The notes below the pieces were generated by a model that saw only the letters and a program-made list of their open reading frames with translations, was not told the DNA's origin and did no database searches. From the NCBI GenBank assembly GCA_004764695.1, contig SMSO01000037.1, positions 4,812,747-4,876,746 of the forward strand: a DNA stretch of 64,000 nucleotides, given 5' to 3'. Numbering within the stretch: position 1 is the first letter of the stretch; each line of letters starts with the position of its first letter. Position numbers and translations under genes: made by a program. This document shows, piece by piece, positions 3,175 to 37,035 of this stretch. The DNA comes from Schizochytrium sp. TIO01 (taxonomy: Eukaryota; Protista; Bigyra: Labyrinthulomycetes).

Positions 3175-4095
3175 GTAGGGAATATCTCATGCGTGCTTAC
3201 TGAGCCAACCTCCCAGGGTGAAGACAGAGACCTTTTCCGGTCCCACGCAAACACCCCCACATGTTGCATACAAAAATTAACTTCGCACCACCAAACTTAT
3301 CAAACAACGAAATCCTGCACACTTCACCTACCTTTCGCATGCACGCACCATGTTTGCTACAATTCACGATATTGTATCTTGAGCTGGGAGCCTTTCGTGC
3401 TATTATATTGAGAGAAGAGCGCATGGCGAAATCTACTAGATTTCTCCTCACCTTTCGATTTCTTAGAGCCTTGTACTTCATCCCTAAAAATTCATATCTG
3501 CTTAAATGGTGTATGCTGCAAAATTAATTAGTGATTATGAACTGCTGAACTTCAATCACATATCTGCCCTAACCTTTCTTTTGCTCGTTTTGTTCACACG
3601 AGGACACTGTATAAGATCTGTGCTACTGTACCAGATTAAATATTAAAGTGTCTTTCGAATCTTAAACAAGAGACTATATGGTGTCTCTTTGTGTCCAAGA
3701 CTTAATACGCGCTATTACTTTTCTCTCGTAAACAAGAAAGAAAAAAAAGCCAAGTATTGTTACCACTACTAACAGTACTACCAATGTATTGAAGCTGTGC
3801 TAAAAGGGTAATATATAGATTTCAAGTTAATAGATTGGTCATTCTAGTGGAAGTTAGGATGGTGCAGAGATTCATTAAAAGTGCTTATGAAGTTTTTTCT
3901 TATCTTTTTAAATTAAAAAAAGTTGTTGATCAGTAAATATACAATTGACAAAGGGAGGAAGAGTTTAACTCAACGTTTGAGAGAATATTGCAATTCGGAA
4001 GAAGAGTAAAAGTGTTGTACATTATTGTAACTTCCCATTCTCTTTCTCTGTTACCAAGAGAATCTATTTTCACTCATATAAGATTTTGAAATGAA

Positions 4096-22865: not shown

Positions 22866-25448
22866 ATGAAATCCACCATGATTGAAGACAAATTGATTAC
22901 GGCGCACGAAATGGTAATGGATGAGCTCCGCAATCGTGACCAGGGCAAAGTTTTTCAAGCAGTGGCTTCTATAGAAATGCGACTATGTAGTCATAACAAT
23001 CCTTCTACAGACGCACCTAGCAGTTTTCAACAGACTAATGAAATGTCTGAGGAGACATCAATGAAAAATGAGACTGCTGCCCTTGAAGGGGACCTTTCTC
23101 CGACAGAAATATCAAGCTGGGAGCGCCATGAGACCGAAGAAGGCTTTGAATACTGGTACAACTCAGTTTCGGGCCAGTCTCAATGGGAGAAACCTGCTTT
23201 AATGAAAGATATTACAAAGTCTGAGGTTATTGGAGATCATGATGCTGATCGAACAGCTAACGATTCAACCTCGCAAAATCTTAACGTTGCGCCAGCCACA
23301 ATCTCAGATTCTGAAAATGATTATGCACAAAGGGCTCGTCTACAAGCATTGAAGGTTATTATAATGGTGCATGACGCTGTGAGGCGTGATGCCACCGAAG
23401 ATGTTCGTGGCATCGTACTAGCTGGCATCGATATTAATGCAAGGGACGAGGATGGTCTCACTCCAATGTTCCATGCAAGGTCTCAGACCATGGTTAAACT
23501 TCTCCTTGAACTTGGCGCAACTGTTAACAATGTTGAAGAAGGTTCCGGACAAAGTGTACTTCATCACTTTGTCAAAAATGGCCGTCTTGACCCCCTCCGA
23601 GCGCTTATAGAAGCACTCATGGACTCACAATCTCGAATTCCACTTGAATGCGGCCTTCTCGATAATTCTATGGAGACCCCCTTGCATACTGGTGCACGGT
23701 GTGGACTTCCTGCCAAAGCATGTCTTTCACACCTTGTTGGTTTAAAATATGTTGACAATAATCAGGAAGCAGATGGATATATTGCTGACCTACGTAATAA
23801 GGATGGAAAGCGAGCAGAGGATCTTGATGAAGATGGCTCGCTTGCAAATGTCTTTGAAATATTCACGAAACAGAAAGATGCTAGAGTTATCGAGGAATGT
23901 CACCAGCAGCTTAAAATATATGAATGGGAACTACAGAAGGCTAATAGAAGTCGTGATGAATGGGAAGCAAAGGCAGTGTCTGCGATCGCTGAGCAGGAGC
24001 GACTTCGTGAGGAGAATACTCAACTTCGTGAGGAGAATACTCGACTTGGTGAAAGTATAGCGGCGTATGAATATTATCAAACAGGCAATCAATATTACAC
24101 GGGTCCAGGGGGCTCTGCTGATCAGTCTGGCCCTGATATTTACTCAACAGCATACAGTGAGCAAGAAGAGAGCTTTGGAAACAACACGACAAATTCGTAC
24201 TATTCTTCATATGCCCAATATCAAGCAAATCCTGAAACTGGGACTATTCAGCAACCTGTAAATGACGAGGATACTTGGCATCAGACGAATCTTGATGACA
24301 CGAGACAGCTCCTACGTCCAGAAACTGATGAAAAAGCGTCTCCACCCACTTTGCATGAATCTGGTATTGGCCACACGCAATATAGCGAGGAGCCTGTCAC
24401 TCAAAAAATTTCAGCAGAAAAGGTAGGCAAAGTCTGGGCGAAGTTCTTTGAACGAGCTGCCAAAGCATCCCTGAGCCGTAACAATGGTCAAGAACAGAAT
24501 TATGTTGAGACTTTCCATCAAACAGCTGAAAATATGCTTGCAGATGCGATTGACGATGCAGACCCTGATTCTGCGCTTGATGCAATGATACAAGGTGCCA
24601 ATCTCGAAGATCTCGGGGACGGGTCGATGTTACATCGATGCTGTGGGCAAGACGTTGGTGCGAGCAAAACACTGCAACGAAAACTTGTAGAAATTGCGAG
24701 CTTGCTTATGGAGTATGGAGCAGACCCTGAGCAAGCTGACTCGCAAGGTACTACTCCTTTACACGTTGCCTGCTTAGCAGGCAATTCTCTCTTGGTGCAG
24801 TTTCTTTTACAAAGCGCTGTTTCTCCTCACTCTGTGGATGAAAATGGGGATTCTCCGCTACATTGTGCTGCTGTTGGTATCACCAAAGGGCATTTCAAAT
24901 GTGTCCAGCTTCTCGCACAATACGGAGCTAACTTGACATGTCAAAACACACAAGGGAACACTGCTCTTGATTGTGCTCGTCTACAGTTAGTCATGATCGA
25001 TGAGCCGCCCAAAGCACTGCGTCAAACAGTTGACCTGCTCGACCAACTGGTGACTATAGCAGGAGACGAGCCCAATCCTCTGCAAGGTGAGATCCAATCC
25101 GCTAATCCGTATCGTGTAGCAAACATTAGAGATGCCTACGCACGTGTCCCCCAGTCTGTGTCTGGATCCGATGATCAACTCAGACACGAGACGAATGAAC
25201 TTAATTTAGATACAGGCAGCATGGATCAAGATCAGATTGTTGAGGAGGATGGATGGCTTACGAATATTTTTGGTAGAGTACTCCCTTTGATACGACAGCC
25301 GCCTGGTTCTCCTGCAAATAGATCACGCCATGAAAATGACCCGGGCAAAGAATCTAGCTCAAAGCTGAACCTGTCAAGACCTCCCACGGATCGCCAGCTT
25401 GCAATGATGGACGTGACTACAGAAACCACCTCAGCTAAAGAACCGTAA
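22866..25448 (+). CDS. WW-domain plus ankyrin-repeat protein with a central coiled coil
   Basis: WW: SSWERHETEEGFEYWYNSVSGQSQWEKP. Ankyrin repeats: GIDINARDEDGLTPM, GQSVLH, ETPLH, GTTPLHVAC, GDSPLHCAA, GNTALDCA. Heptad region LREENTQLREENTRL. Confidence 0.85.
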   Translation: MKSTMIEDKLITAHEMVMDELRNRDQGKVFQAVASIEMRLCSHNNPSTDAPSSFQQTNEMSEETSMKNETAALEGDLSPTEISSWERHETEEGFEYWYNSVSGQSQWEKPALMKDITKSEVIGDHDADRTANDSTSQNLNVAPATISDSENDYAQRARLQALKVIIMVHDAVRRDATEDVRGIVLAGIDINARDEDGLTPMFHARSQTMVKLLLELGATVNNVEEGSGQSVLHHFVKNGRLDPLRALIEALMDSQSRIPLECGLLDNSMETPLHTGARCGLPAKACLSHLVGLKYVDNNQEADGYIADLRNKDGKRAEDLDEDGSLANVFEIFTKQKDARVIEECHQQLKIYEWELQKANRSRDEWEAKAVSAIAEQERLREENTQLREENTRLGESIAAYEYYQTGNQYYTGPGGSADQSGPDIYSTAYSEQEESFGNNTTNSYYSSYAQYQANPETGTIQQPVNDEDTWHQTNLDDTRQLLRPETDEKASPPTLHESGIGHTQYSEEPVTQKISAEKVGKVWAKFFERAAKASLSRNNGQEQNYVETFHQTAENMLADAIDDADPDSALDAMIQGANLEDLGDGSMLHRCCGQDVGASKTLQRKLVEIASLLMEYGADPEQADSQGTTPLHVACLAGNSLLVQFLLQSAVSPHSVDENGDSPLHCAAVGITKGHFKCVQLLAQYGANLTCQNTQGNTALDCARLQLVMIDEPPKALRQTVDLLDQLVTIAGDEPNPLQGEIQSANPYRVANIRDAYARVPQSVSGSDDQLRHETNELNLDTGSMDQDQIVEEDGWLTNIFGRVLPLIRQPPGSPANRSRHENDPGKESSSKLNLSRPPTDRQLAMMDVTTETTSAKEP

Positions 25449-26572
25449 GCCTAGAGATAAAAACCAAGAAAGACAGGGGTAGTTATGGTATTTTGGATAA
25501 GCACAAAAAAATCAAGAAAACGAAGGTGCCAAGCTCAAATCAACGATCGAAGGCATATTCATGACTTGCATCTTCTCTTGAGGACTGGAAGATGGTAACA
25601 TAATACACGTGGAGCTAGATAACAGAACAACCTAAAATGTGATATAAAAGGAACATCAGGATACTACAAATATCCAGTGTTCTCGAGGAATTGTGTGACA
25701 ACTTAACATTAAAAAATCTCCTACAAGTATGATCTTGGAAATCCTCGACTGTTTTCTATCATGGTCAAACGATGAATCGTATCTCCAGTGTAGGTGGAAA
25801 GAATCATCAATGTCTCTTGACTCGACGAGATACCTTTGAAGGGAAGGAATCAAGGTCTTCTTCCTTGGTATCGAAGAGGGTATTTCGAGAGAAAAAGAAG
25901 AAATTTGTTTCGAAATTGAAGTTCAGGAAACTACCTGGCAGTCCAAGAAAGATCCTCCATCGTAAAAACTAGTTTTCCTTTATTTTGTTTTAGCCTACTT
26001 TCAAAGAGCTTTTGCAGTAAGAGAGAATTCTAGGTTGTCCATGCGCAAATGCAAAGATTAATTTGGGCTTAAGTTGAAACTACTACCAGGAAAGAGCACT
26101 CTGAGCCGTGCTCAAACAAGCGTATCTCTTCAAGTTAACCTGATGAGTATGTAGATGGCGCTTTTAGGTTCCTGTCGGTAGTGCAAGTTGAGTACTATTC
26201 TGAGCATCGTTGGTCTGGACGGATCAAGGATGCGCTATTTTTTTCCGTCACAAATGAAAAGCTTTATTTTTCAAGCTGCATGTGCACATACAGGTAAATC
26301 TGGGATTCTGTTAGCGTGTACAGAACAAAGGAGAAATAAAGGGTTTCTTTGCATCCCAAGACGCCGTCTAATATCGGGCGAAAGTCTTCCACTAGGTTTA
26401 TTCATGGAGTTTTGGGGAGAGTTCTAGTTGCTTCTAGGAAATTGCATGAGAGAATTGACAGCCAATTGGTGCAAGCAAAACAAAAGCATTATGAAGAAAC
26501 AAAAGCATTAACGACGCTCTGCCTCATCAACTAAATTTAATTTTCAATAATTGAGGGGATGCTACACTTAGT

Positions 26573-29500
26573 CTAGGCGCTCTTTCGACGCTTTTTTGAG
26601 ATCAGAGTTGGTGCATTGGATGAGCGTTGTGGAGTTCTACGTTTGCTCGCTGCTCGCGTGGTAGTCACTCTGTCTTCAACATCAAACTCTTCATCACTAT
26701 CTTCTGGTTGAAAATCACTCTCCGCATCGATAAAATCTTCATCAGAATCAGAATGATTGTCAACCCCCTTGATAGACTTGCTGTTTTGGGAAAACTTCTC
26801 TCCAAAGAAGACAGCACGGTCGTGCTCAATATGATCGAGGAAACTCTCCAGCGGCGGAGTTCTTTTACCAAAGGGCATGAGACGTCGTCTAGCAACTTTG
26901 ATGCTCTTTGATTTATCACCAGTGGTGCCTAAAAGAAAGTCTTCACTGCCACGAACAAACTTATCTGGCACGAAAACAACATACTTGCGTTTGTTGCCAT
27001 ATTTCACTAGATATGGGGATCCAAGTTTTACTTCCACTTCAATCTCAGATTGAATACTAGCAATATCCGATGAGGCGTCTGATGAAGAGGCCTTTGAAGA
27101 GTTGTTACCAGACTGCTCCAAATTAGAGCTTGGCACACTACTGCTTGAGACCATGTCCACAATGAATGGGGGCTCTTGTGTGTGGGAAGTGCGTGTCGTT
27201 GGCACAATCGAATCATCAGATTTGTCAAGGATGAGTGTTGATGGAGACTGAGATGATTGTCTCAAGGCTTGCCCTGGAGGATTGGAGGGCTCAGGATTTA
27301 CCATCGATTGTGAATCTACCATTGCAGTTGACTCTAGTTTAGGCCTTTTCCTTACGTCACTGATAACATCTTTAAGACGATGAAACTCACGTTCAGGGTT
27401 TTCAAGCCAATTGGCAGGCCAAACTTGGAAAAACTCATAGCCGAGCCTTTCTAACAATGATTTTCTGTAGATACTCTGTCGATAATTGTCGAACGAGTTA
27501 CATTGAATAACCAAGGTACGCTGGTTACCCAATCGCACAAGAATACCCTGGAGGAGTGTGTTGGCGTCCGTTACTCGATCAATCTTAGTTGATCGGAAAT
27601 GATCCTTTCGGACAAGTGCATTGTAGATCACAGCCTCTAGTGAAGCATTAGCGGAGGAAAGCTTATTCGCAGATATTGTTTCGTCCACAGAGAATTCTCT
27701 GAGAACTGTGCGCACACGTTTTTCATCACCGTTACTGACAGCATGTGCATAAGAGAGATAGCCAAATAACATGGACTTGCCACTGAGCATGCCTCCCTCA
27801 TCAAGTTCACGCTCTGGCGAGAGATACTCAACTTCAGGAATACTTGTCACAATATGTACCTTTTCTTTGGCTCGTGAGAAGAGAACATTCAAGTAGCGAT
27901 AACCAACTCCAGCAAACGCAATTCGTCCAAAGCGCTTCTCAAATACTCCGCGAGCATTGGGCCCGAAGGTGGTTCCTACAATAAGAGTGTCAACTTCGTC
28001 ACCTTGTAAATTCTCAAGGTTTTTCACAAAAAATTGTTGCTTATTCTGCAATGTGCGTAGCTGCTGCAGAAAGACTCGGTCAGGGTGATGCTTGATGACC
28101 TTGAGGATCTGCTTTTTTTGAGCTTCATTGAAAGTTGCAACTGCGATAGAACTATTTATGACCTGCTTTGCAACGATTCTTCGCAATAACTCGGTGATCT
28201 CCTCAGCTTCAGTGACATTTTGCTGGTCTTTATATTTACCACTAACTTGCTTCAGTTTAATGGCTGGATCATCAGAACTAGACGCTGGACGCTCAGGGCA
28301 CAAGGCTAAGGTTGGGTAAATTGCGGCGCAGTGAAACCTCATCAAATCAGGGTTCAGGCTTCGGTAGTGAAAGCACAAATCAACTGAGCGAAAGGAAAAT
28401 GAGTGATCCTTGGCATAGTCCAAAAGGGATTCAGCGTTAGCGGCGTTACGACGGCTTCGAAGAGCTTGCGTTTTACTTGCTGAAGAGGCAGGAATGCGAG
28501 GATTGCGCTCTTCACCATCAAAATCATGAAAGAGAAAGTCATCGTCGATAGGATCAGAATCAGGAACGTCTGGCATACCATCTCCTGCACCACTGAACAA
28601 AGTCGTTGGTGGCATTTGCTTATTGTCACCAGCAATAATAACTTTCCTTCCTTTTAATAGGGAAGCATACGCGTCGTGAGTAAGGCTCTGCGAGGCTTCA
28701 TCGAAGATCACAAGGTCAAACAGTTGGGCTTTGCCCTTGAACAACGTGCTTGCCACCTCTGGAGTGCAAAAAAGGATGGGGAAACAACCACAAAAGAGCG
28801 CTGCGTCGCCAACAAGCTCTCGTAGTGAGTTGACTTGGATATTTTTGGCCTTGCGGTTAAAGAACTGTTCGAAGCGCTGACGACCGTGGGACTCAAAAAT
28901 CTTGATACTATTCGCCATTGCCTTGGCTTGGCGGATGCAAAACAGCATTTGGACCATCCGTTGAATCTGAGTCAACGCATCGCTAAGATGATCCAAAACA
29001 AAATCAGAGGTAATAAGTTCCCGGCATGTTGGCTCCACCTCTTTGACTAGAACGCACAGCTTCACTCTGTCTCCCCAAGTGAGGGTATCTAACTTTCCAG
29101 CTTCAAGAAAGTCGGTAAAGAAGCTTTCATTTTGAACGAGGCCAAAATCTAGCAAAGTTTGAATAGATTCTGCACACTGGCGCCAGCGTCCCGTATTCTC
29201 ACTGTTGTAAGGTTTCAGGATTTTTTCAATCGACCAGTATGCATCGTTGTTGTTAGTTAGTTCTAAACAAGGATCAAAGGCTCTTATCGCGGGCTTAGTG
29301 CTAAAGGGACTTTGTATGATCGCATCCTTCATTTTCTCATTGACTTCCTTGTACTCCATAAAACCTTTCGCACGAACTTCATAAAATTCTTTCCATGCCT
29401 CAGAGGAGCTCTTACTTGTCACCTCTAATAAATACACCGCGGTTTTTTCGTGCATTTTTTTACTCCACTTAACAATACGATCAATATTTGAAAGTGTAAA

Positions 29501-31567
29501 GTTCGTTGGGAGTTGGGCGTCAGCGATAGGGTTGCCCCTTTTCTTCCGTGCAGAACCATTCTCATCATCATTACTCGCAGCTTTCGCAACCTCATGTTTA
29601 ATTGAATCTTCAATACGTTTCAAAGCCATGCGAAAATAGCGCAGACGCGTCTGAACAGGTGTAAAAAACAGAGATGAGATTCGATCAAACCATGATGGGG
29701 TATCTGAGCGTTGAATATCTTCGTTGGGGATATCCTTTAGACAAACTCCTATAGCTTGAAGTTCTTCGGCAAAGTTCTCCCAGGTAGCCAGTTTTTGGTT
29801 AAGTTCTTCAATAAATTCATGCTTGGCTTTTTCAAGAATCAAGTCTCGTTCATCGAGTTTGTGTTTGATGTCGCTCAGCAGAGTTTCCATCTGACTTTGA
29901 ATATTGTCTGGGTTGAAATAATCAGACTTAAATCTCGTAAAGTTCAATAATGAGAGTGCTTGGAGGAATTCACGCGGAAGGTTCTTTTGGCAACGATCAA
30001 TGCGCATCAGATGATCTTGCGCAAATACGCGGCCAATAAATTGTGCACCCTCTGGAGGGGTAAGGACCGTTGCACCATTGAGTTTGCGTTGAATAATGAA
30101 TGCAATCGCCTCTTGCACTGTCATATTAAAGGATACCAACCTGTTATTCACTTCACAGTGTTGAGTAAACTTGTGTTCCTCATTTGCAATGTCGGTCTCA
30201 AGACGACGGATATCTTTTAGAATTTTGTTTTCTTCTCGATCGTATTGCTCCAGAGGAATGGCATCAACATCAACACGATTCTCTCTAGCACGTTGGACTA
30301 GGGCTTCTCGGTCTTGTACATTGGTAATGAGCGCCGTAAATTTGTCACCTGTCCACCCGTTCCAGGAAAGTTCGGCAAGCTTTCGTTGTAAAATTTCAAG
30401 CGGGGTCTTTTTTTCGCAAACCACTAGAACCTTGAGATTATTTGCGCCTGCACAGGAAATGACCGAAGCGAGAGTTTGCGACTTTCCAGTACCTGGAGGA
30501 CCATTAATGACTAAATTACGGTTTTCAGCGAGCTGTCGAATGGCCTCAAACTGGCTTGGGTCTAGTGCTAAGCCGCCATGTAAAATATTGAAAGAGCCTC
30601 TGGCGCCGCTAATAACCGGTCCAGTTCCTATGGAAAGTTTGCGTTGTTTCTGGTAGGCACGAAGGTCCTTGAGAATTGTGTTATTTCCAGTTTTGAAAAG
30701 TGCTAGTACAGCTGCCCAAACTACCCGGCACACAACACGAGTAGACCCCGAGCTCGAAGTTGAACTGTGTGTGTTTGCTTTGGTAGTCTTTGGGGCCGCT
30801 GGGAGTTCTTGCGGAAATTTCCTATCCAAGGGGTCCATGACTCGCCTCAACGCCTCACTGATGTCTTCCCGACCCGAAAAAATATTCTTTCGCGCCGCAG
30901 GTAAGAGAGAGAGAATAATGTTTTCCACGTCTACGTCATTGAACATATCTTTATCAGCATATCGGCGGCCCTGCTTTAGGTCAAGCTCTGCCTCTGTGAG
31001 TAAAAATTGATAGAGAGCATCGTTTATCTCTGCAGGATCTGAAAAATCCCGGCTAATCATTGTGCGCCCATTGACGGAGTCTAGGCGGACTTTCCACAAG
31101 ACGAGTGGACAGAGATATGTGCGACCTGTCTTCTCATCGAAACATTCAATTTGGGGAAATCCAAGCCGAAGAAGATCGACACCATAATCTTTCCTCTCCT
31201 CTTTGGTACGTTGGAGGAGTCCTTCAAGTTGGCGGACTGCTTGCTGAGCAGATGCGGACTTGGCAGAGCTTGGTTTAGCGGATATTTTCAAGTTGAATTC
31301 ACTTGTTGATAGTAAGCCACGCATGACATGTGTAGCAAGGTCAACTTTCACTAGCGACCCATCAAGAGTTTCGTGTGAGCTCTCTATATCAGGCCAATGT
31401 TTGAGATTGGTGAGGTCGAATTTGGTGGATGATTTATCTTCTGCATAGCAGCGCATGAAGTTGGATTGCTTAGTATCTCCACGAAGCTTAGCAATCAGTT
31501 GCTCAACGAAGGCATTTTCGTCAATTTCTCGCATGCTGATTGCACTGGACATTTCAGCCCTGCTCAT
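26573..31567 (-). CDS. DUF4011 - superfamily 1 (Upf1-like, AAA_11/AAA_12) helicase - degenerate Vsr/DUF559-like nuclease fusion; prokaryotic Hhe-type architecture
   Basis: 1664-aa uninterrupted ORF. DUF4011-like N-terminus (EERKDYGVDLLRLGFP...CPLVLWKVRL...AEINDAL). Helicase motifs: LDPSQ (Q), VINGPPGTGKSQT (I), VLVVCEK (Ia), FDLVIFDEASQ (II), AGDNKQMPPT (III), ESLLD, HYRS, VATFNEAQ, FFVKNLENLQGDE (V), YLNVLFSRAK (VI). Then VIQCNS...RKSLLERLGYEFFQVWPANWLENPEREF, the Vsr-like C-terminal signature. Confidence 0.88.
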   Translation of the reverse strand: MSRAEMSSAISMREIDENAFVEQLIAKLRGDTKQSNFMRCYAEDKSSTKFDLTNLKHWPDIESSHETLDGSLVKVDLATHVMRGLLSTSEFNLKISAKPSSAKSASAQQAVRQLEGLLQRTKEERKDYGVDLLRLGFPQIECFDEKTGRTYLCPLVLWKVRLDSVNGRTMISRDFSDPAEINDALYQFLLTEAELDLKQGRRYADKDMFNDVDVENIILSLLPAARKNIFSGREDISEALRRVMDPLDRKFPQELPAAPKTTKANTHSSTSSSGSTRVVCRVVWAAVLALFKTGNNTILKDLRAYQKQRKLSIGTGPVISGARGSFNILHGGLALDPSQFEAIRQLAENRNLVINGPPGTGKSQTLASVISCAGANNLKVLVVCEKKTPLEILQRKLAELSWNGWTGDKFTALITNVQDREALVQRARENRVDVDAIPLEQYDREENKILKDIRRLETDIANEEHKFTQHCEVNNRLVSFNMTVQEAIAFIIQRKLNGATVLTPPEGAQFIGRVFAQDHLMRIDRCQKNLPREFLQALSLLNFTRFKSDYFNPDNIQSQMETLLSDIKHKLDERDLILEKAKHEFIEELNQKLATWENFAEELQAIGVCLKDIPNEDIQRSDTPSWFDRISSLFFTPVQTRLRYFRMALKRIEDSIKHEVAKAASNDDENGSARKKRGNPIADAQLPTNFTLSNIDRIVKWSKKMHEKTAVYLLEVTSKSSSEAWKEFYEVRAKGFMEYKEVNEKMKDAIIQSPFSTKPAIRAFDPCLELTNNNDAYWSIEKILKPYNSENTGRWRQCAESIQTLLDFGLVQNESFFTDFLEAGKLDTLTWGDRVKLCVLVKEVEPTCRELITSDFVLDHLSDALTQIQRMVQMLFCIRQAKAMANSIKIFESHGRQRFEQFFNRKAKNIQVNSLRELVGDAALFCGCFPILFCTPEVASTLFKGKAQLFDLVIFDEASQSLTHDAYASLLKGRKVIIAGDNKQMPPTTLFSGAGDGMPDVPDSDPIDDDFLFHDFDGEERNPRIPASSASKTQALRSRRNAANAESLLDYAKDHSFSFRSVDLCFHYRSLNPDLMRFHCAAIYPTLALCPERPASSSDDPAIKLKQVSGKYKDQQNVTEAEEITELLRRIVAKQVINSSIAVATFNEAQKKQILKVIKHHPDRVFLQQLRTLQNKQQFFVKNLENLQGDEVDTLIVGTTFGPNARGVFEKRFGRIAFAGVGYRYLNVLFSRAKEKVHIVTSIPEVEYLSPERELDEGGMLSGKSMLFGYLSYAHAVSNGDEKRVRTVLREFSVDETISANKLSSANASLEAVIYNALVRKDHFRSTKIDRVTDANTLLQGILVRLGNQRTLVIQCNSFDNYRQSIYRKSLLERLGYEFFQVWPANWLENPEREFHRLKDVISDVRKRPKLESTAMVDSQSMVNPEPSNPPGQALRQSSQSPSTLILDKSDDSIVPTTRTSHTQEPPFIVDMVSSSSVPSSNLEQSGNNSSKASSSDASSDIASIQSEIEVEVKLGSPYLVKYGNKRKYVVFVPDKFVRGSEDFLLGTTGDKSKSIKVARRRLMPFGKRTPPLESFLDHIEHDRAVFFGEKFSQNSKSIKGVDNHSDSDEDFIDAESDFQPEDSDEEFDVEDRVTTTRAASKRRTPQRSSNAPTLISKKRRKSA

Positions 31568-34500
31568 GAGCTTGCGCTTTACAGCTTTGCGAGCTTTATT
31601 GCCAGTAGAGCTTTAAAAATATGAGACCTTGCTCCTGACAAATTGCTAACTCACGGATGATCAGAAATAGACTAAACTTAATCAACGATCCGTTCAGATT
31701 CACGTTCTAGCTGTGGAATTGTCGTAGGGTATCTTGGTTTCTAGAAAATACAAGAGGAGAATGACACGTTGTTGTGTAAAAGGGTAGCGCCAGAGCAGGG
31801 AGAGTGGGGTTGGCTAAACCGATGGAAAGAACTCTAGAGCTGCTCTCGCTTCGAGGCCTACCTGCCTCGAAGAGAAAGAAGAGCCAGCTGGAGAGTCGCT
31901 TCTCAACCAATTCAAAGAAACCTGCCAAAGCAGGAAACCCGCGGGGTTCGGGGCCGTCGGCGGGCTCAACGATTTGCAGAAACCGCGACTGCAGAAAGAG
32001 CAGAAAATACAGAAGCGGTTTTGTTCTGAAGAAAATTCAATCATACTACCAACTGTTCTGTACTTAGGTATGGTAAAAAAAAAAAAGAAAAAAGAAAAAA
32101 AGTACAGAAACTTTCTATTCAATGAAGGCACAGCTAACTCCTCGTTGATACATAAAAGCTCAAGAGAGCTCTTCCGGCACAGGGTGCAGTGCTCCTTCGT
32201 CTGGGTCATCACAATAATTGCAAATTTTGTCAAATGTCTCGGCAACCAGAGCAACTTTGAAAATAGAACAAACTCATGATAAACTAGCTTTAGAAAAAAC
32301 AAAGTTTAACTTTAAAAATAAAAACTGTTTCCATTACTCACTCTTATGAGTATTAACTAACGCGGGAAAGACAGAACAGACAAAACCAACAGCCTGAGAG
32401 ACTCGTAAGAGAAGGATCCAGCATTACATGAAACTTAGCTTCAAGCTGGTCACACGCATCATTCTCGTTATCTCTTTTAGATGGGCGTCAAATGTAAGAT
32501 ACCACGAAGCTGCACAGAGTTTATGAATGGTTGCTCTAATGATTGGCGACTTTGAATCGAATGCAGACAAGGAAACGAATCATGAAACCCCCGTTTTAAT
32601 TGCCTTCCTAATAGGCCGACTACCTAGCAACAGAACTACTAATGCTACACTGCATCCTACTAATTGATCCCTCAGCGTTCCTTTCGTTCTTTCTGTTGGC
32701 TGTTGGCCTCTGGAGGAAGTGTGGACACAGCGCTCTCAATTTCAGAAACCACCAACAACTTGAAGCATTGCTCTCAACCATTAAACCTCCTAACTTTGGA
32801 AAACTACTCGTGGCCTTTCGTTCTCAAACTTATTAGTGTTAGAGCTTCCTAGACATTGCGTAGAGTCTCGTTTCACGGAAATGCGGCTAGCCTTTACAAA
32901 AGTTATTTAGTAAACGCTATAAGTAGATAGTTTGGAACAAACTAGTTTAACTTGGATAGTTGGTTTTGCTTTCCGGGCATGCTTGCAAAGGTCCGCTTTT
33001 TCGCGTCTTTGTCCCCTTCCTTCTTTTTTCGAGGTGCGCACAGCTCCAAATCTAACATGGAGCGTAAAATGTAATGGTGTCTTAAAGCGGTGATGATTAT
33101 TATGGCTACAACATTTCTTTTGTGCAACGTAGCACTAGACAGTACCTAGTATATTGTAAAAAAACCACTATATCCACTATTTATCTAAAGTAGAGCACTC
33201 TCATCGCATCGATAAAGTGCTTATCCTTAGTTTCAGTTTTGCAAGGAAGTTGCTAGCAGTAGAGCATGGATATCCTGGGAGAGCAGTAAGGATTTATATA
33301 TCTACTTTTCAAAAGTTTCGACATGACTTTGAAAGAGATGGATTCTAATTATTATAAAATCATTCACTAATCCTGCAAAGGGTGTGACAACATAAAACGA
33401 AAGTGTCACTTTGAGGTATTGTCATCAGTTTGATAAACTCCAAACATGAAAGGAGCTCTGTTTTCCAGCAAACGCCATACATGACACGCCTAAAATATGC
33501 TAGTTTTCTGCGATCGAATGGGGATAAGATTTCATTCGTTGTGAACAGTAGCCGAATAACAACAGAGAGCAATTTTGCCCACCTCAACTGAACGATTCTA
33601 TTCTCAGAAAGGTAAGTTGTGGTTCCTCTCTATGCATTTAAAATCCGAGAAAGAGCGTTCCTAAGCTTAGTCTATCTTTAATTGCATTAATCCCTGTGGA
33701 TAATCTGATAAGTTAATCAGCGAAGTACTTTGTATGATTTCTGTATGTATCTAAACAGCGTATTGTTGGACTAGCTAATTTTGCCGAGTTCCCTCAATGG
33801 TAGTACAATTTTCTTATAACTGCATCTAATTATTTGCTAGATAGCAGCAAACCTTGCAGACATCTCACAGAAAAAAGGAACCGTTTTTGATATTTTTTTT
33901 TTAAATCATAGAGTTTTGTTTCCCACATGAATGTAATGCTGTTTGGACTAATCGGAAGGTCAGTAGGCAAGGCATAACCAGAGCCCTTGGCAGAATAATA
34001 GGTCCTGAACTATTATATATTGTATACGAGAAAGCTTGAGTAGCAGACACAAAGGTATGAGGCTAAGGTAACTCAAGAGTGAAAGTGCACTCCACAATTA
34101 AGTAAATATAAAAGGGCAAACCTGAGGTGGTACTTGAGGAAACAAGTTAACCAACCCCCCTGAATTTTATGTAAACAGATGGGGTGGGTTCTGCCTTAAT
34201 CTCCTAATTAGAATATGAGCTGGCCACTCTCTAGTTGTTCATCTCTACTCCAAGGTCAGCAGATCGCTAAATCTTAAAAGCTAAAGTTTGTCAAGCCTTC
34301 TTCAAGCCTTCCTCGAGCCTCTTGCCTTCATCTTTATAATCACTATCTATCTGACCAGAACCATCTATCAGCGTGTAGTTCCTGTGATATTATAACTAAC
34401 TAAAAAATGTTGTTCACCCTCGAACAACAATTGACTTACGCTTACTCTCCAAGAAAACCATCAAATTAATATAACCTTCACGTCTCAAAAGAGAGGAAAT

Positions 34501-37035
34501 CAAGTTTGCAAGCCTAGAAGCGTCATGTTCTACACATAAGCCAAGTCCAACTTGTTAGTGTTGCCTAATTGCAATAGCAGGTAACCTGAAAAGTACTGAG
34601 CTGTCTGTAGATACTGTACAACATAATTTTAAAAATCGTATTGTAGAGCCAAAGAGCAAGTGTTCATTGATCAGATGTGATGGGCGCGGTGAATTTCAAC
34701 TTCTGGGAGTTGGTCAAAATATCAAAAGAATAAAACCAGACGTGTCAACTTCATGGTAGCTGTATCAATAATCAATTCTGACTATCCACTTATGGTTGTA
34801 CTTAACGTGGTGACAACCAGTCTGAAAGAGAGTGATGTCTTCTCTGTCAAAGAATTGTTAGCCGCAAAGAATTAGCAAAGATTTGGGCTGCATGAAAAAT
34901 AAACCCGTGTCCCCAAGCTACTTGGAATACTTTCATACCGCTCATAGTCTGTGCGTATAGTCCAAGGTTTCATGGGCCCTGGAAAGAATAAGCGTTTCGC
35001 TGTTTTGTGGAGATGCAATTTTTATCTGACTCATTCTGGCGTCGCACTACTCCAAAGCAAAATGGCAATGCCTGGTACTTTAATTATCTCTTTAAAAGAC
35101 GTAGACGGCCTCACGGTGTGGAGAAGGTTGTCATTTGCTTTGGTCGTGACAATCATGCTTGCGTATACACTCAAGTTCAGGTGTCTTTTCCAAATACCTA
35201 GACTGGCCATCGCTCAAGACGGAAGGAGGGGGAGGTTTGAAATCCTTTGAGTGGCGACGACAGTTTTTGTTTTAGTGTACCTTTAAAGTTGCGCAAAGTT
35301 AGCGTGCCAGGCGTCTGTCTACTCACAGCAAAGTACACCATTTCTGATTTGCAAATCGCCGCAGCACCACTGCTCTGGCGTTTAACTCGCACACAAGTTC
35401 AAGAGACTCGCTTTCTGCTCCGCTCTGCATCTAAAACCTCACGGCTCGTCCTCATTGTACCTTATTGCCGCTCCGCTTTTAAAGGCGGTGTCAGTCCGTT
35501 GATGGGAGATGCACATTTCTCCATTGTAATAGATACGGCCATTCTGAGTAAACGATGTTGACGCTACTGAGTAGATCTCCAGCTTGTTGGAGCTCAAAGC
35601 ACCACAAATGCGGCTACAGCTTGATTGGCAGCGCAGGCAAGCATTGAATTGTTCTGTTTCTCTCCGAGACCTGCTGCAAAACCCAGCAAGCAAGTCTTTC
35701 GCCAAAGCTTTCTTTATTTCAAGTTGTGAGTCCCCCCTTCATAAACCTCTAGCTAGCTAGCATTACTACTACTAGAAGCTAAAAGTCAGATCTGATCATC
35801 ATACTAACCATCTTTAATCAAAATTTGAAAAATTAAAATTGTTAGCTAACAAAAAGAAAAAGGAAAAGATAGGGAGCTAAGAATCGAATAGTTTAATTTT
35901 AAAAAAAGGATTCGAAAAGAAGAAAGATCTCTCTCTATCTCTTAGCACTATAAACGCTATAGATTACTATTGCCTAGCATGCCCAGCTAGTAAAAATAGT
36001 AGTTAAGAGCTCCGGCCTAAAGATTGGGTCCTCTTCTTCTTCTTTTTGCTATTTAGGGGGTTGGAAAAGTTCTTTCCGTCTCGAAAATACTAGCGAGTAA
36101 GTACCTACTAGGAGGTGCTATTTAGTAGCTAGCTATGTATGACTATGATAAACAGGAAGGGGAGGTGAAGGAAGGTAAATAAGGAGGATGAAAGAGAGAA
36201 AGAGAGAATTGAAAGAACTCAGAAAAGAGAGAGAAACAAATCCAGATTGAAGTGCGGCGGACTTGCTTGCGCAGGACGGGTACGTTGCAAGGAAGAAGGC
36301 CTTGCACCCGCGGGGTGGGGTGCGGCGAAGAGAGAAGTCTGATGAGGACGCAGAGGGAAGTCTGGTCTGGAGGTCCTCGAGGCGAGCCAGTAGGTGGTCT
36401 TGCAAACTCGGGACAGACTTGGGTCCTCAGGCAACCAGGATATTCGTTCAATTGCGTGTTCAAACTTTCACTTTGTTTGTTATCTTTTCTCCTTTTCAAA
36501 TAAATCACTTTGGACTGGTAACCAACCTGTTTGGTAACCTTCTCCGAACACAAGGATTGAGGCTAGACATGAGCTTGCAGAAGCAAATGAGGGAGTAGAA
36601 GGCTTTCTGGGCCTGCGTGAAGGGAGGGGGCCTTTCCTGAAGACATTCATATTGGTTGAGGCTTGTTGGCTAACGTGTTTATGCACTTCTGTTGTTTTGG
36701 TTTGTTTAATTTGCTGGAGATGTTCACCTGGTTTTCGTGTTCAATCTTTGTGTCGAAATGTGGTGCATGTGGTAATCTTATCCTCGCCTATGTGGTGATG
36801 CTACATACGCCTTGATGCGATCGGGACTTGTTCGTCGGGAAATACAAACACGGCGCAAATTTCTCGGGTCACACGGGACGGTAGCTGGGCTTTCCCTCCG
36901 AAGGAACGCACTTTTTGCTCTTCATTTGTACCAATTCGAGCGATCGCAATCTTTCTGCACAAAATACACGTTGCGCAGAGAGCCAAGTGACTAGCAATAC
37001 CATAATAAAAGGCCTCAGTTTAAATCTTCGTCAAG

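Follow-up and report, generated by a model that had tools for sequence, protein, structure and literature searches.

We analysed a 64,000-nucleotide stretch of the Schizochytrium sp. TIO01 genome (the window), which covers 4.81-4.88 Mb of contig 36, a chromosome-scale contig. The gene described here, which we call the helicase gene, lies at about 4.84 Mb and encodes a protein with a divergent DUF4011 domain, a superfamily 1 (SF1) helicase and a Vsr-like domain, an arrangement that appears to descend from a bacterial defence-type family. Its coding sequence (CDS; 26573..31567, minus strand, as are all parts of the gene given below) is complete and intronless, begins with ATG, and continues in an uninterrupted frame for 1664 amino acids (aa) plus a stop codon. 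Upstream of the ATG the frame stays open for only 15 codons. The gene is single-copy in the 64.07-Mb, 37-contig genome.

The flanking genes are eukaryotic. They encode a WW plus ankyrin protein, Vps39, an ODAD1-type coiled-coil protein, an FHA protein, a GT10 fucosyltransferase and a class I/II aminotransferase, the last of which is also catalogued in MMETSP and EukProt. The WW-ankyrin gene (22866..25448, plus strand) is convergent with the helicase gene and is its microsynteny partner: the same pairing and orientation were found in L085, the locus that carries the ortholog P0004, where the WW-ankyrin protein can be aligned over its full length to the one in the window (E 1e-80); this microsynteny is conserved at about 44% protein identity.

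The nearest non-eukaryotic homologs of the protein are bacterial and the open reading frame (ORF) has no introns, as might be expected if a bacterial contaminant or a chimeric assembly had placed a foreign gene in the protist chromosome. We regard the chance of such an artifact as negligible. The gene is located 4.8 Mb inside the contig, its G+C content (GC, 0.448) and GC at third codon positions (GC3, 0.421) are the same as those of neighboring genes, and its relative codon usage correlates with that of the pooled neighbors at r = 0.81. Contigs of four public sequencing runs are collinear with the CDS and show no joints. A 9.5-kb DNA-type contig from one run covers the whole locus, and a 22.8-kb Logan contig is recorded for both the helicase protein and the aminotransferase 5.5 kb away, which suggests that one independent contig holds the two genes. 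The L085 ortholog adjoins the same WW-ankyrin gene, and the best bacterial identity is merely 31-35%. Contamination and chimerism are dismissed because independent assemblies span the locus. The initial annotation of this DNA had described an uninterrupted, intronless ORF of 1664 aa among plainly eukaryotic neighbors and had proposed a check for a chimera; the ORF and the neighbors were found as described, and independent assemblies span the helicase gene together with eukaryotic genes.

Between the helicase gene and the aminotransferase lies a 5.4-kb region (31568-37035) in which no ORF exceeds 162 aa and neither an Rfam family nor a tandem repeat was found. Intron-rich genes or a long non-coding RNA may lie there, or the region may be an extended promoter or intergenic sequence.

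N-terminal domain and helicase core

The first 335 residues (30563..31567) form an N-terminal domain whose core, residues 108-199 (30971-31246), appears to be a divergent DUF4011. The protein itself has no Pfam match to DUF4011 at E ≤ 0.1. Its ortholog P0002 reaches 22.2 bits, equal to the gathering score, ortholog P0067 scores 18.6 bits, and the bacterial sister sequence P0075 scores 41.8 bits. Alignment of the eukaryotic N-termini to DUF4011 regions with hhalign gave a probability of 86.7% (E 4e-6) over query residues 108-199. The DUF4011-like N-terminus first proposed from the sequence is therefore confirmed only in part, by the hhalign result and the score of P0002 but by no Pfam match in this protein.

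Pfam matches in the protein are to AAA_11, AAA_12, AAA_30 and AAA_19. Helicase domain 1A begins with a segment (residues 336-440; 30248..30562; AAA_30, AAA_19 and AAA_11) that includes a Walker A motif, GPPGTGKS, at residues 356-363 (30479-30502), and motif Ia, VCEKKTPL, at residues 383-390. Motif Ia is invariant across the clade of eukaryotic orthologs described below; Walker A is absent from two truncated gene models of this clade and reads GPPGCGKS in P0003. The remainder of the helicase core (residues 901-1250; 27818..28867; AAA_11 and AAA_12) carries motif II (FDEASQ, 955-960), motif III (GDNKQMPPT, 980-988), the sequences ESLLD (1046-1050) and FHYRS (1066-1070), motif V (NLQGDEVD, 1186-1193) and motif VI (YLNVLFSRAK, 1225-1234). 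The catalytic residues of the motifs in this part are invariant in all seven aligned clade sequences. Between motifs Ia and II the two parts of the core are separated by a large, mostly helical insert, some 460 residues long (residues ~441-900; 28868..30247), which is shared in large part with bacterial relatives of about 1300 aa; alignment columns with at least 70% occupancy fall inside it. Because much of the insert aligns with these relatives, it is, as judged from the alignment, an ancestral feature of the family and not a eukaryotic addition. All of the helicase motifs quoted in the initial annotation were located, as was the insert that splits the helicase.

AAA_11 and AAA_12 are typical of Upf1-like helicases, and the closest solved sequence is that of IGHMBP2 (E 3e-12). 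These matches would fit a eukaryotic SF1 helicase of ancient vertical descent, akin to Upf1, Sen1, IGHMBP2 or ZNFX1, that merely resembles the bacterial family. However, the IGHMBP2 match spans only 45 residues around motifs II-III, the matches to IGHMBP2 and to a Sen1-like chain are limited to stretches of 45-60 residues, and TIGR00376 scores 72.8 bits against a cut-off of 348.9. Bacterial proteins, by contrast, can be aligned to residues ~45-1405, a span that takes in the N-terminal domain, the insert and the Vsr fold. In addition, only five close representatives were found in 1.84 billion clusters, and the eukaryotic clade is nested within bacterial diversity (see below). A vertical origin of this kind is scarcely credible on these grounds.

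Relationship to known defence families and to short bacterial proteins

The helicase protein had been taken for a Hhe-like defence protein kept intact. Hhe (HheA), a single-gene system that reportedly goes back to Gao et al. 2020, belongs to the same superfamily and has the same domain order of DUF4011 (only weakly matched in our protein), SF1 helicase and Vsr-like nuclease; helicase motifs I, Ia, II, III, V and VI are present in our protein. Among PADLOC profiles, however, PDC-S37 (PDLC05009; 1.4e-81, 273 bits) ranked above Hhe (PDLC02194; 1.2e-46, 156.7 bits), for which the best match is limited to profile positions 1439-1799. The PDC-S37 match itself is split into three stretches; of the 1550 profile positions, the best stretch takes in 893-1228. 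Among NCBIfam profiles, ProA (NF058533) gave 7.5e-80 and 269 bits against a cut-off of 1500, and Hhe (NF042953) gave 209.1 bits against a cut-off of 2000. By these profile scores the protein comes nowhere near being an equivalog of Hhe or of ProA. Hhe is also longer (its profiles have 1797-1911 positions), falls in another subfamily in the trees, and depends on a nuclease residue, E1731, whereas the nuclease residues of the query are eroded. PDC-S37 and ProA, the best library matches, are long proteins with DUF4011 and DUF3320; no DUF3320 was matched by Pfam in the query, and a true long member, P0012 of Devosia, reaches 1114 bits with the PDC-S37 profile, where the query reaches 273. We found no usable paper on PDC-S37 or ProA in the literature that was searched.

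We searched one genome per prokaryotic species for relatives by using tblastn. The best matches came from Flavobacteriaceae, Chitinophagaceae, Saprospiraceae, Ignavibacteria and Balneolales, with 31-35% identity over query residues ~45-1405 and lengths of about 1200-1500 aa. These short DUF4011/SF1/MTES_1575 proteins occur in Bacteroidota, Ignavibacteriota and Balneolota, for example in Arenibacter, Flagellimonas, Flavobacterium taihuense and Chitinophaga and in the metagenomic sequences P0073-75; the label given to them by JGI is "very-short-patch-repair endonuclease". They are collinear with the query and share its N-terminal domain, split helicase, helical insert and Vsr-like fold. They differ from it in retaining the nuclease residues (D, E-C-D-G, D, R and S) and in ending at the nuclease or in other tails, without the Royal-like barrel and the end resembling a nuclear localisation signal (NLS) described below. 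They score only 400-506 bits to PDC-S37 and make up a separate, unnamed subfamily that is a cousin of Hhe, PDC-S37 and ProA. The nearest kin of the eukaryotic protein are thus members of a different, shorter and mainly Bacteroidota subfamily and not Hhe.

About 8 of 401 sampled Bacteroidota genomes carry a short-type copy matching P0075 at E ≤ 1e-95. Identity to P0075 in these 401 genomes is 45% at most. In the few loci inspected, the neighborhoods of the short-family genes vary by genome. In Arenibacter catalasegens (L014:10400-12145) the gene adjoins the type I restriction-modification methylase HsdM, in Arenibacter sp. F26102 (L006:10499-11776, L006:2285-4396) it adjoins DUF2130 and a DEAD-box helicase, and a BRCT protein was also seen as a neighbor. 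Such variable surroundings resemble defence islands and fit an accessory, possibly defensive gene. Our literature search found no defence test of the short subfamily.

Some bacterial members carry a GreA/GreB C-terminal domain after the nuclease, both in the short sister group (P0075, residues 1341-1404) and in the long family (P0012, residues 1732-1804), which hints that these proteins dock on RNA polymerase. In the eukaryotic clade the region of this domain is replaced by the Royal-like barrel. Two archaeal loci, from Methanomassiliicoccaceae, L062 (ORFs at 3288 and 8236) and L039 (ORFs at 1 and 3944), each encode two tandem long-type paralogs.

A eukaryotic clade nested among bacterial sequences

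When 1.84 billion cluster representatives were searched exhaustively with HMMER, only five close full-length relatives emerged, with 45-55% identity to the query (P0002, P0003, P0067, P0004/P0055 and P0068). The next matches were at E 1e-88, and the bacterial diversity in the same search amounted to 13,717 representatives at E ≤ 0.001. The eukaryotic clade comprises at least six lineages. P0067 is a transcript of Mucochytrium quahogii (QPX thraustochytrid; MMETSP0098), which shows transcription of the family in at least one species. P0002 (NCBI CAK9079766.1) is closest to the query by identity (50-55%) and branches among the thraustochytrid sequences, and its record is labelled Durusdinium trenchii; this record may represent thraustochytrid contamination or a secondary, eukaryote-to-eukaryote transfer.

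Several members have interrupted genes. The loci L086 and L087 (P0068) have a single break of about 53 nucleotides (nt) after residue 361. A distant member with 36-37% identity and a GC of 38-39% (L089:5385-8140 and L090:3451-7616; Ga0105053_10017114 and Ga0209491_10011939) has about nine short breaks or frame changes, which are identical in two separate metagenomes and include the residue-361 site common to L086 and L087. From their sequences, these breaks look like introns gained within eukaryotes after transfer. The four interrupted genes (L086, L087, L089 and L090) were read piece by piece and left out of the trees. The last exon of L090 has the same eroded nuclease site as the other members. 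The helicase gene belongs to a vertically inherited labyrinthulomycete gene family and is neither a recent nor a private acquisition. No paper on DUF4011 proteins in eukaryotes was found in our literature search.

Phylogenies were computed with LG+G4 (104 rows, 1079 columns) and with LG+C20+F+G4 under the posterior mean site frequency approximation (PMSF; 50 rows, 1071 columns), with branch support from the Shimodaira-Hasegawa-like approximate likelihood-ratio test (SH-aLRT). The eukaryotic clade received a support of 100 in both trees, on a long stem of 1.0-1.4. Its sister is the metagenomic, bacterial-type group P0073-75 (support of 91 and 95). Together they fall inside the short Bacteroidota/Ignavibacteriota family (support of 100 in both trees), apart from the long Hhe/PDC-S37 type. 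The phylogeny that had been proposed as a check on horizontal origin accordingly places the clade within a bacterial one in both trees, and the suggested bacterial origin is upheld. Because the eukaryotic clade is tiny and nested in bacterial sequences, the direction of transfer was from bacterium to eukaryote, and one old event is the simplest history.

A large DNA virus, such as a mirusvirus or a giant virus, might have delivered the gene in place of a direct transfer from a bacterium, as thraustochytrids host integrated and episomal mirusviruses and relatives of giant viruses. A scan of IMG/VR with the clade alignment, however, yielded only two distant phage-type matches, confined to the C-terminal half and with 26-29% identity. 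In the tree both fall with the long bacterial family, beside Bacillota sequences, and the flanks of the helicase gene are ordinary cellular genes. A viral carrier appears very improbable.

The Vsr-like domain has kept its fold and lost conserved residues

An AlphaFold2 (AF2) model of residues 1245-1415 has a predicted local distance difference test score (pLDDT) of 87 and places a Vsr/DUF559-like endonuclease fold at residues ~1300-1408 (27344..27670). Structural comparison with VIA-align gave Z-scores of 10.3 for the catalytic domain of I-Bth0305I (2.7 Å over 92 residues), 9.8 for the endonuclease-like protein 3hrl and 8.4 for Vsr (1cw0), confirming the Vsr-like domain that had been predicted to follow the helicase. 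Foldseek found no match in PDB at E ≤ 0.001 for this model or for the C-terminal barrel model described below; the fold assignment of both models rests on the VIA-align Z-scores and on which folds fill the lists. The same Vsr-like fold occurs in the RAP domains of eukaryotic proteins of the FASTK family and of apicomplexan mitoribosomal proteins, with a Z of 9.4-9.6 to our model. RAP-domain proteins differ in being organellar RNA-binding proteins without a helicase, and shared descent is not implied.

The profile MTES_1575, a family of Vsr-like restriction endonucleases, scores 25.8 bits in the query (cut-off 38.2) and covers only profile positions 54-95; in bacterial members it scores 65-95 bits across positions 1-96. 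We aligned the Vsr-like domains of 98 bacterial relatives by hidden Markov model (HMM) and compared them with seven eukaryotic sequences. Strongly conserved in the bacteria are D49 (98%; motif G-f-r-i-D), E78-C-D80-G81 (93-96%), D94 (87%), R116 (94%) and S119 (95%), which presumably form the nuclease active site, given their conservation and the Vsr fold. None of the seven eukaryotic sequences keeps D49, D80, G81, D94, R116 or S119, each of which is substituted or deleted, and a six-residue segment following the ECD motif is deleted in all eukaryotic members. In the protein studied here E78 is also replaced, by Gln (VIQCN). The structural residues R99, L103, G109, W118, W122 and E131 are retained in the eukaryotic domain. 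With the conserved nuclease residues lost and the segment deleted, the Vsr-like domain is most likely a pseudo-nuclease.

These losses bear on whether the gene could be a functional stand-alone immune gene of the Hhe kind, in which the helicase senses viral or mobile DNA and the Vsr-like nuclease destroys it. Homology to Hhe, PDC-S37 and ProA, intact helicase motifs and strong purifying selection (see below) are all compatible with that role, and thraustochytrids carry persistent DNA viruses (PMC12606086). Yet six residues that are 87-98% conserved in the bacterial relatives are lost in every eukaryotic member, the segment at the site is missing, and the query has Q for the motif Glu. In E. 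coli Hhe the nuclease-domain mutation E1731A abolishes defence (bioRxiv 10.1101/2022.06.16.496414), and we infer that E1731 corresponds to E78, the Glu of ECDG. Scores to the curated equivalog profiles are 7-10 times under their cut-offs. A working Hhe-like immune gene is improbable on this evidence. Of the initial claim that the gene was kept intact, the ORF and the helicase motifs are indeed intact and selection is strong (pN/pS 0.08), but the nuclease residues are eroded in all eukaryotic members, a eukaryote-type C-terminal domain has been gained by all but one member and an acidic or basic tail by most, and "intact bacterial immune gene" was an overstatement.

An added C-terminal module

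The Vsr-like domain is followed by a low-complexity linker (residues 1411-1510; 27038..27337) in which S, T, P, N and Q together account for 54% of residues and which is unconserved in the orthologs. Next is a small beta-barrel plus helix (residues 1512-1600; 26768..27034), which resembles Tudor and PWWP domains and is found in the eukaryotic clade only. This domain of about 85 residues is conserved in all seven aligned clade sequences, and no trace of it was seen in the distant member L090. The protein ends in an acidic-then-basic tail (residues 1601-1664; 26576..26767; 25% D+E and 17% K+R) with a putative NLS, KKRRK, recognized from sequence only (residues 1658-1662; 26582-26596). The orthologs P0003 and P0067 terminate in the basic runs KRRR and KKRRRR, and an acidic or basic tail is present in most clade members.

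The AF2 model of the barrel consists of four strands and a helix with a pLDDT of about 90; Royal-family domains have an SH3-like barrel of five strands, with a helix after it in PWWP domains. VIA-align matched it to the PWWP domains of MSH6 (Z 7.3) and PWWP2B (7.1) and to the Tudor domains of PHF19 (6.7) and ERCC6L2 (6.6). The Foldseek list was filled mostly by Tudor, PWWP and chromo domains, with weak E-values (E ≥ 0.03). Within the clade, the aromatic residues of the PYLVKYG and VVF segments show partial conservation. The barrel has no Pfam match at E ≤ 10 and no paralog in the genome, and a search of the ESM Atlas returned scores of only 0.79, under the noise level. The possibility that it is a diverged bacterial C-terminal domain was rejected, as hhalign against bacterial tails, including those of the GreA/GreB type, gave a probability of 0.1%. 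On the basis of the model, we consider the barrel Royal-family-like and not a proven member of that family.

The barrel superposes on the ERCC6L2 Tudor domain at 1.5 Å over 56 residues and on the MSH6 PWWP domain at 2.6 Å over 79 residues. Repair and chromatin ATPases of the ERCC6L2 and MSH6 type share a design idea with the predicted protein, that of a nucleic-acid ATPase tethered to chromatin. They differ in that sequence identity is 12-15% and the helicase cores are of unrelated origin, so the likeness is one of analogy and not of membership.

Selection and possible transcription

Variants were collected from four public runs with different organism labels. Among 24 differences in the CDS, 19 are synonymous and 5 nonsynonymous, a ratio of nonsynonymous to synonymous polymorphism (pN/pS) of 0.08. 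Three of the five nonsynonymous changes fall in the low-complexity linker (residues 1427, 1468 and 1501) and the other two in the helical insert; none lies within the helicase motifs. Variant density is 0.48% in the CDS versus 1.2% in the flanks. The helicase gene is under purifying selection.

All run contigs are collinear with the genome at the helicase gene, and the gene therefore has no intron. Two runs that we guess to be RNA contain contigs of about 6 kb, which together mark a possible mRNA at 25954..32010 (minus strand). The contig of run X9 extends from ~25954 to 32008 and that of run X17 from ~26086 to 32010; their right ends agree within 2 nt, and the DNA-type contigs of runs X4 and X19 extend further. 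The right ends (32008/32010) are located about 440 nt upstream of the ATG and about 65 nt downstream of a T-rich tract. These contigs are suggestive of an unspliced mRNA of about 6 kb, with the RNA status of the runs a guess; among the runs listed for the gene, none is recorded as RNA. The T-rich tract itself, of about 35 nt on the minus strand (32075-32110), may belong to the promoter of the helicase gene.

A captured helicase with a possible nuclear role

Codon usage like that of neighboring genes, the shared WW-ankyrin neighbor, the Mucochytrium transcript and the pN/pS of 0.08 argue for one old transfer followed by vertical descent. The loss of nuclease residues and the gain of the barrel and of a tail resembling a nuclear-targeting signal point to a repurposed nuclear helicase and not to a working bacterial immune gene. 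Our preferred reading, which we put at roughly 60%, is that the gene encodes a nuclear, possibly chromatin-tethered, ATP-dependent helicase, derived from an old bacterial transfer and domesticated during vertical descent.

In this history a bacterial gene for a DUF4011 protein with SF1 helicase and Vsr-like nuclease, from the ~1300-aa subfamily of mainly Bacteroidota and Ignavibacteriota, would have been transferred once to an ancestor of the thraustochytrid labyrinthulomycetes and then inherited vertically under purifying selection. Before the known eukaryotic lineages diverged, the Vsr-like domain would have lost its presumed catalytic residues and a six-residue segment that includes part of the ECDG motif while retaining its fold, and the C-terminal module would have been gained, with its disordered linker, Tudor/PWWP-like barrel and, in most members, acidic or basic tail. 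The ATPase and helicase motifs would have been preserved throughout. The present protein would be imported to the nucleus, where the barrel might anchor it on chromatin or on a modified partner, and ATP would drive its movement along, or its remodelling of, DNA or possibly RNA, as in Upf1-like SF1 helicases. The dead nuclease fold and the DUF4011 domain may serve as nucleic-acid-binding or regulatory modules, and the protein itself would cut no DNA. Its target could be foreign DNA, for example a mirusvirus episome or integrant, or the ordinary genome, whose maintenance it might serve; a role in repair or transcription fits equally well, and an immune or anti-mobile-element role is possible.

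Several observations weigh against the nuclear helicase reading. Two orthologs, P0055 and P0068, carry an Asp two residues from the lost catalytic Asp, and most orthologs retain the Glu of ECDG, so that residual or altered nuclease chemistry is possible. The Royal-family match is middling (Z ≤ 7.3, Foldseek E ≥ 0.03) and may reflect a common small-barrel arrangement. Nuclear import is suggested by the basic motif alone. The signs that this particular gene is transcribed come from runs that are only guessed to be RNA. Branch support consists of SH-aLRT values from quick searches only, and with a stem of 1.0-1.4 the sister relation to P0073-75 could be a long-branch effect. Finally, the dinoflagellate label of P0002 conflicts with a purely labyrinthulomycete history, unless that record reflects contamination or secondary transfer.

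The protein might alternatively be a rewired immune or genome-surveillance factor, in which the helicase and DUF4011 domain sense nucleic acid, the Royal-like domain discriminates chromatinised host DNA from foreign DNA that is naked or carries different marks, and host factors recruited by the protein do the killing or silencing. Descent from a defence-type family whose bacterial neighborhoods are variable and include a type I restriction-modification methylase, the gain of a chromatin-reader-like fold, the NLS-like end of this protein, and retention under selection in lineages with nuclear DNA viruses would all agree with such a factor; in Aurantiochytrium a mirusvirus episome and an integrant are both expressed (PMC12606086). 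The same features, however, fit a repair or transcription helicase equally well, and the short bacterial subfamily is itself one for which the literature yielded no tested defence role. We consider rewired immunity unlikely. Doubtful, too, is the specific proposal that a captured defence-type helicase was rebuilt as a nuclear surveillance factor for which chromatin state flags foreign DNA, such as that of a mirusvirus, so that the silencing or repair machinery of the host can deal with it.

Transfers of bacterial defence genes to eukaryotes are central to current thinking on the origins of innate immunity. In most documented transfers the enzymes have retained their chemical activity; examples are cGAS-like enzymes, viperin, and TIR or gasdermin-like proteins. 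The helicase described here runs opposite to these cases: the motor is intact, the effector nuclease is apparently inactivated, and eukaryote-type parts have been acquired, namely a Royal-like domain and an NLS-like end, together with apparent introns in some lineages. New here are the loss of nuclease residues in every eukaryotic member and the gain of a Tudor/PWWP-like barrel in all but one. The family thus offers a testable example of the domestication of a prokaryotic immune module, and it may reveal what the helicase and DUF4011 part of Hhe-like systems does alone. Aurantiochytrium, with its persistent nuclear DNA viruses, is an organism in which the immune and housekeeping readings could be separated by experiment. 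If the surveillance-factor reading were true, the protein would represent a novel type of innate immune sensor in eukaryotes, one whose prokaryotic ancestry can be traced.

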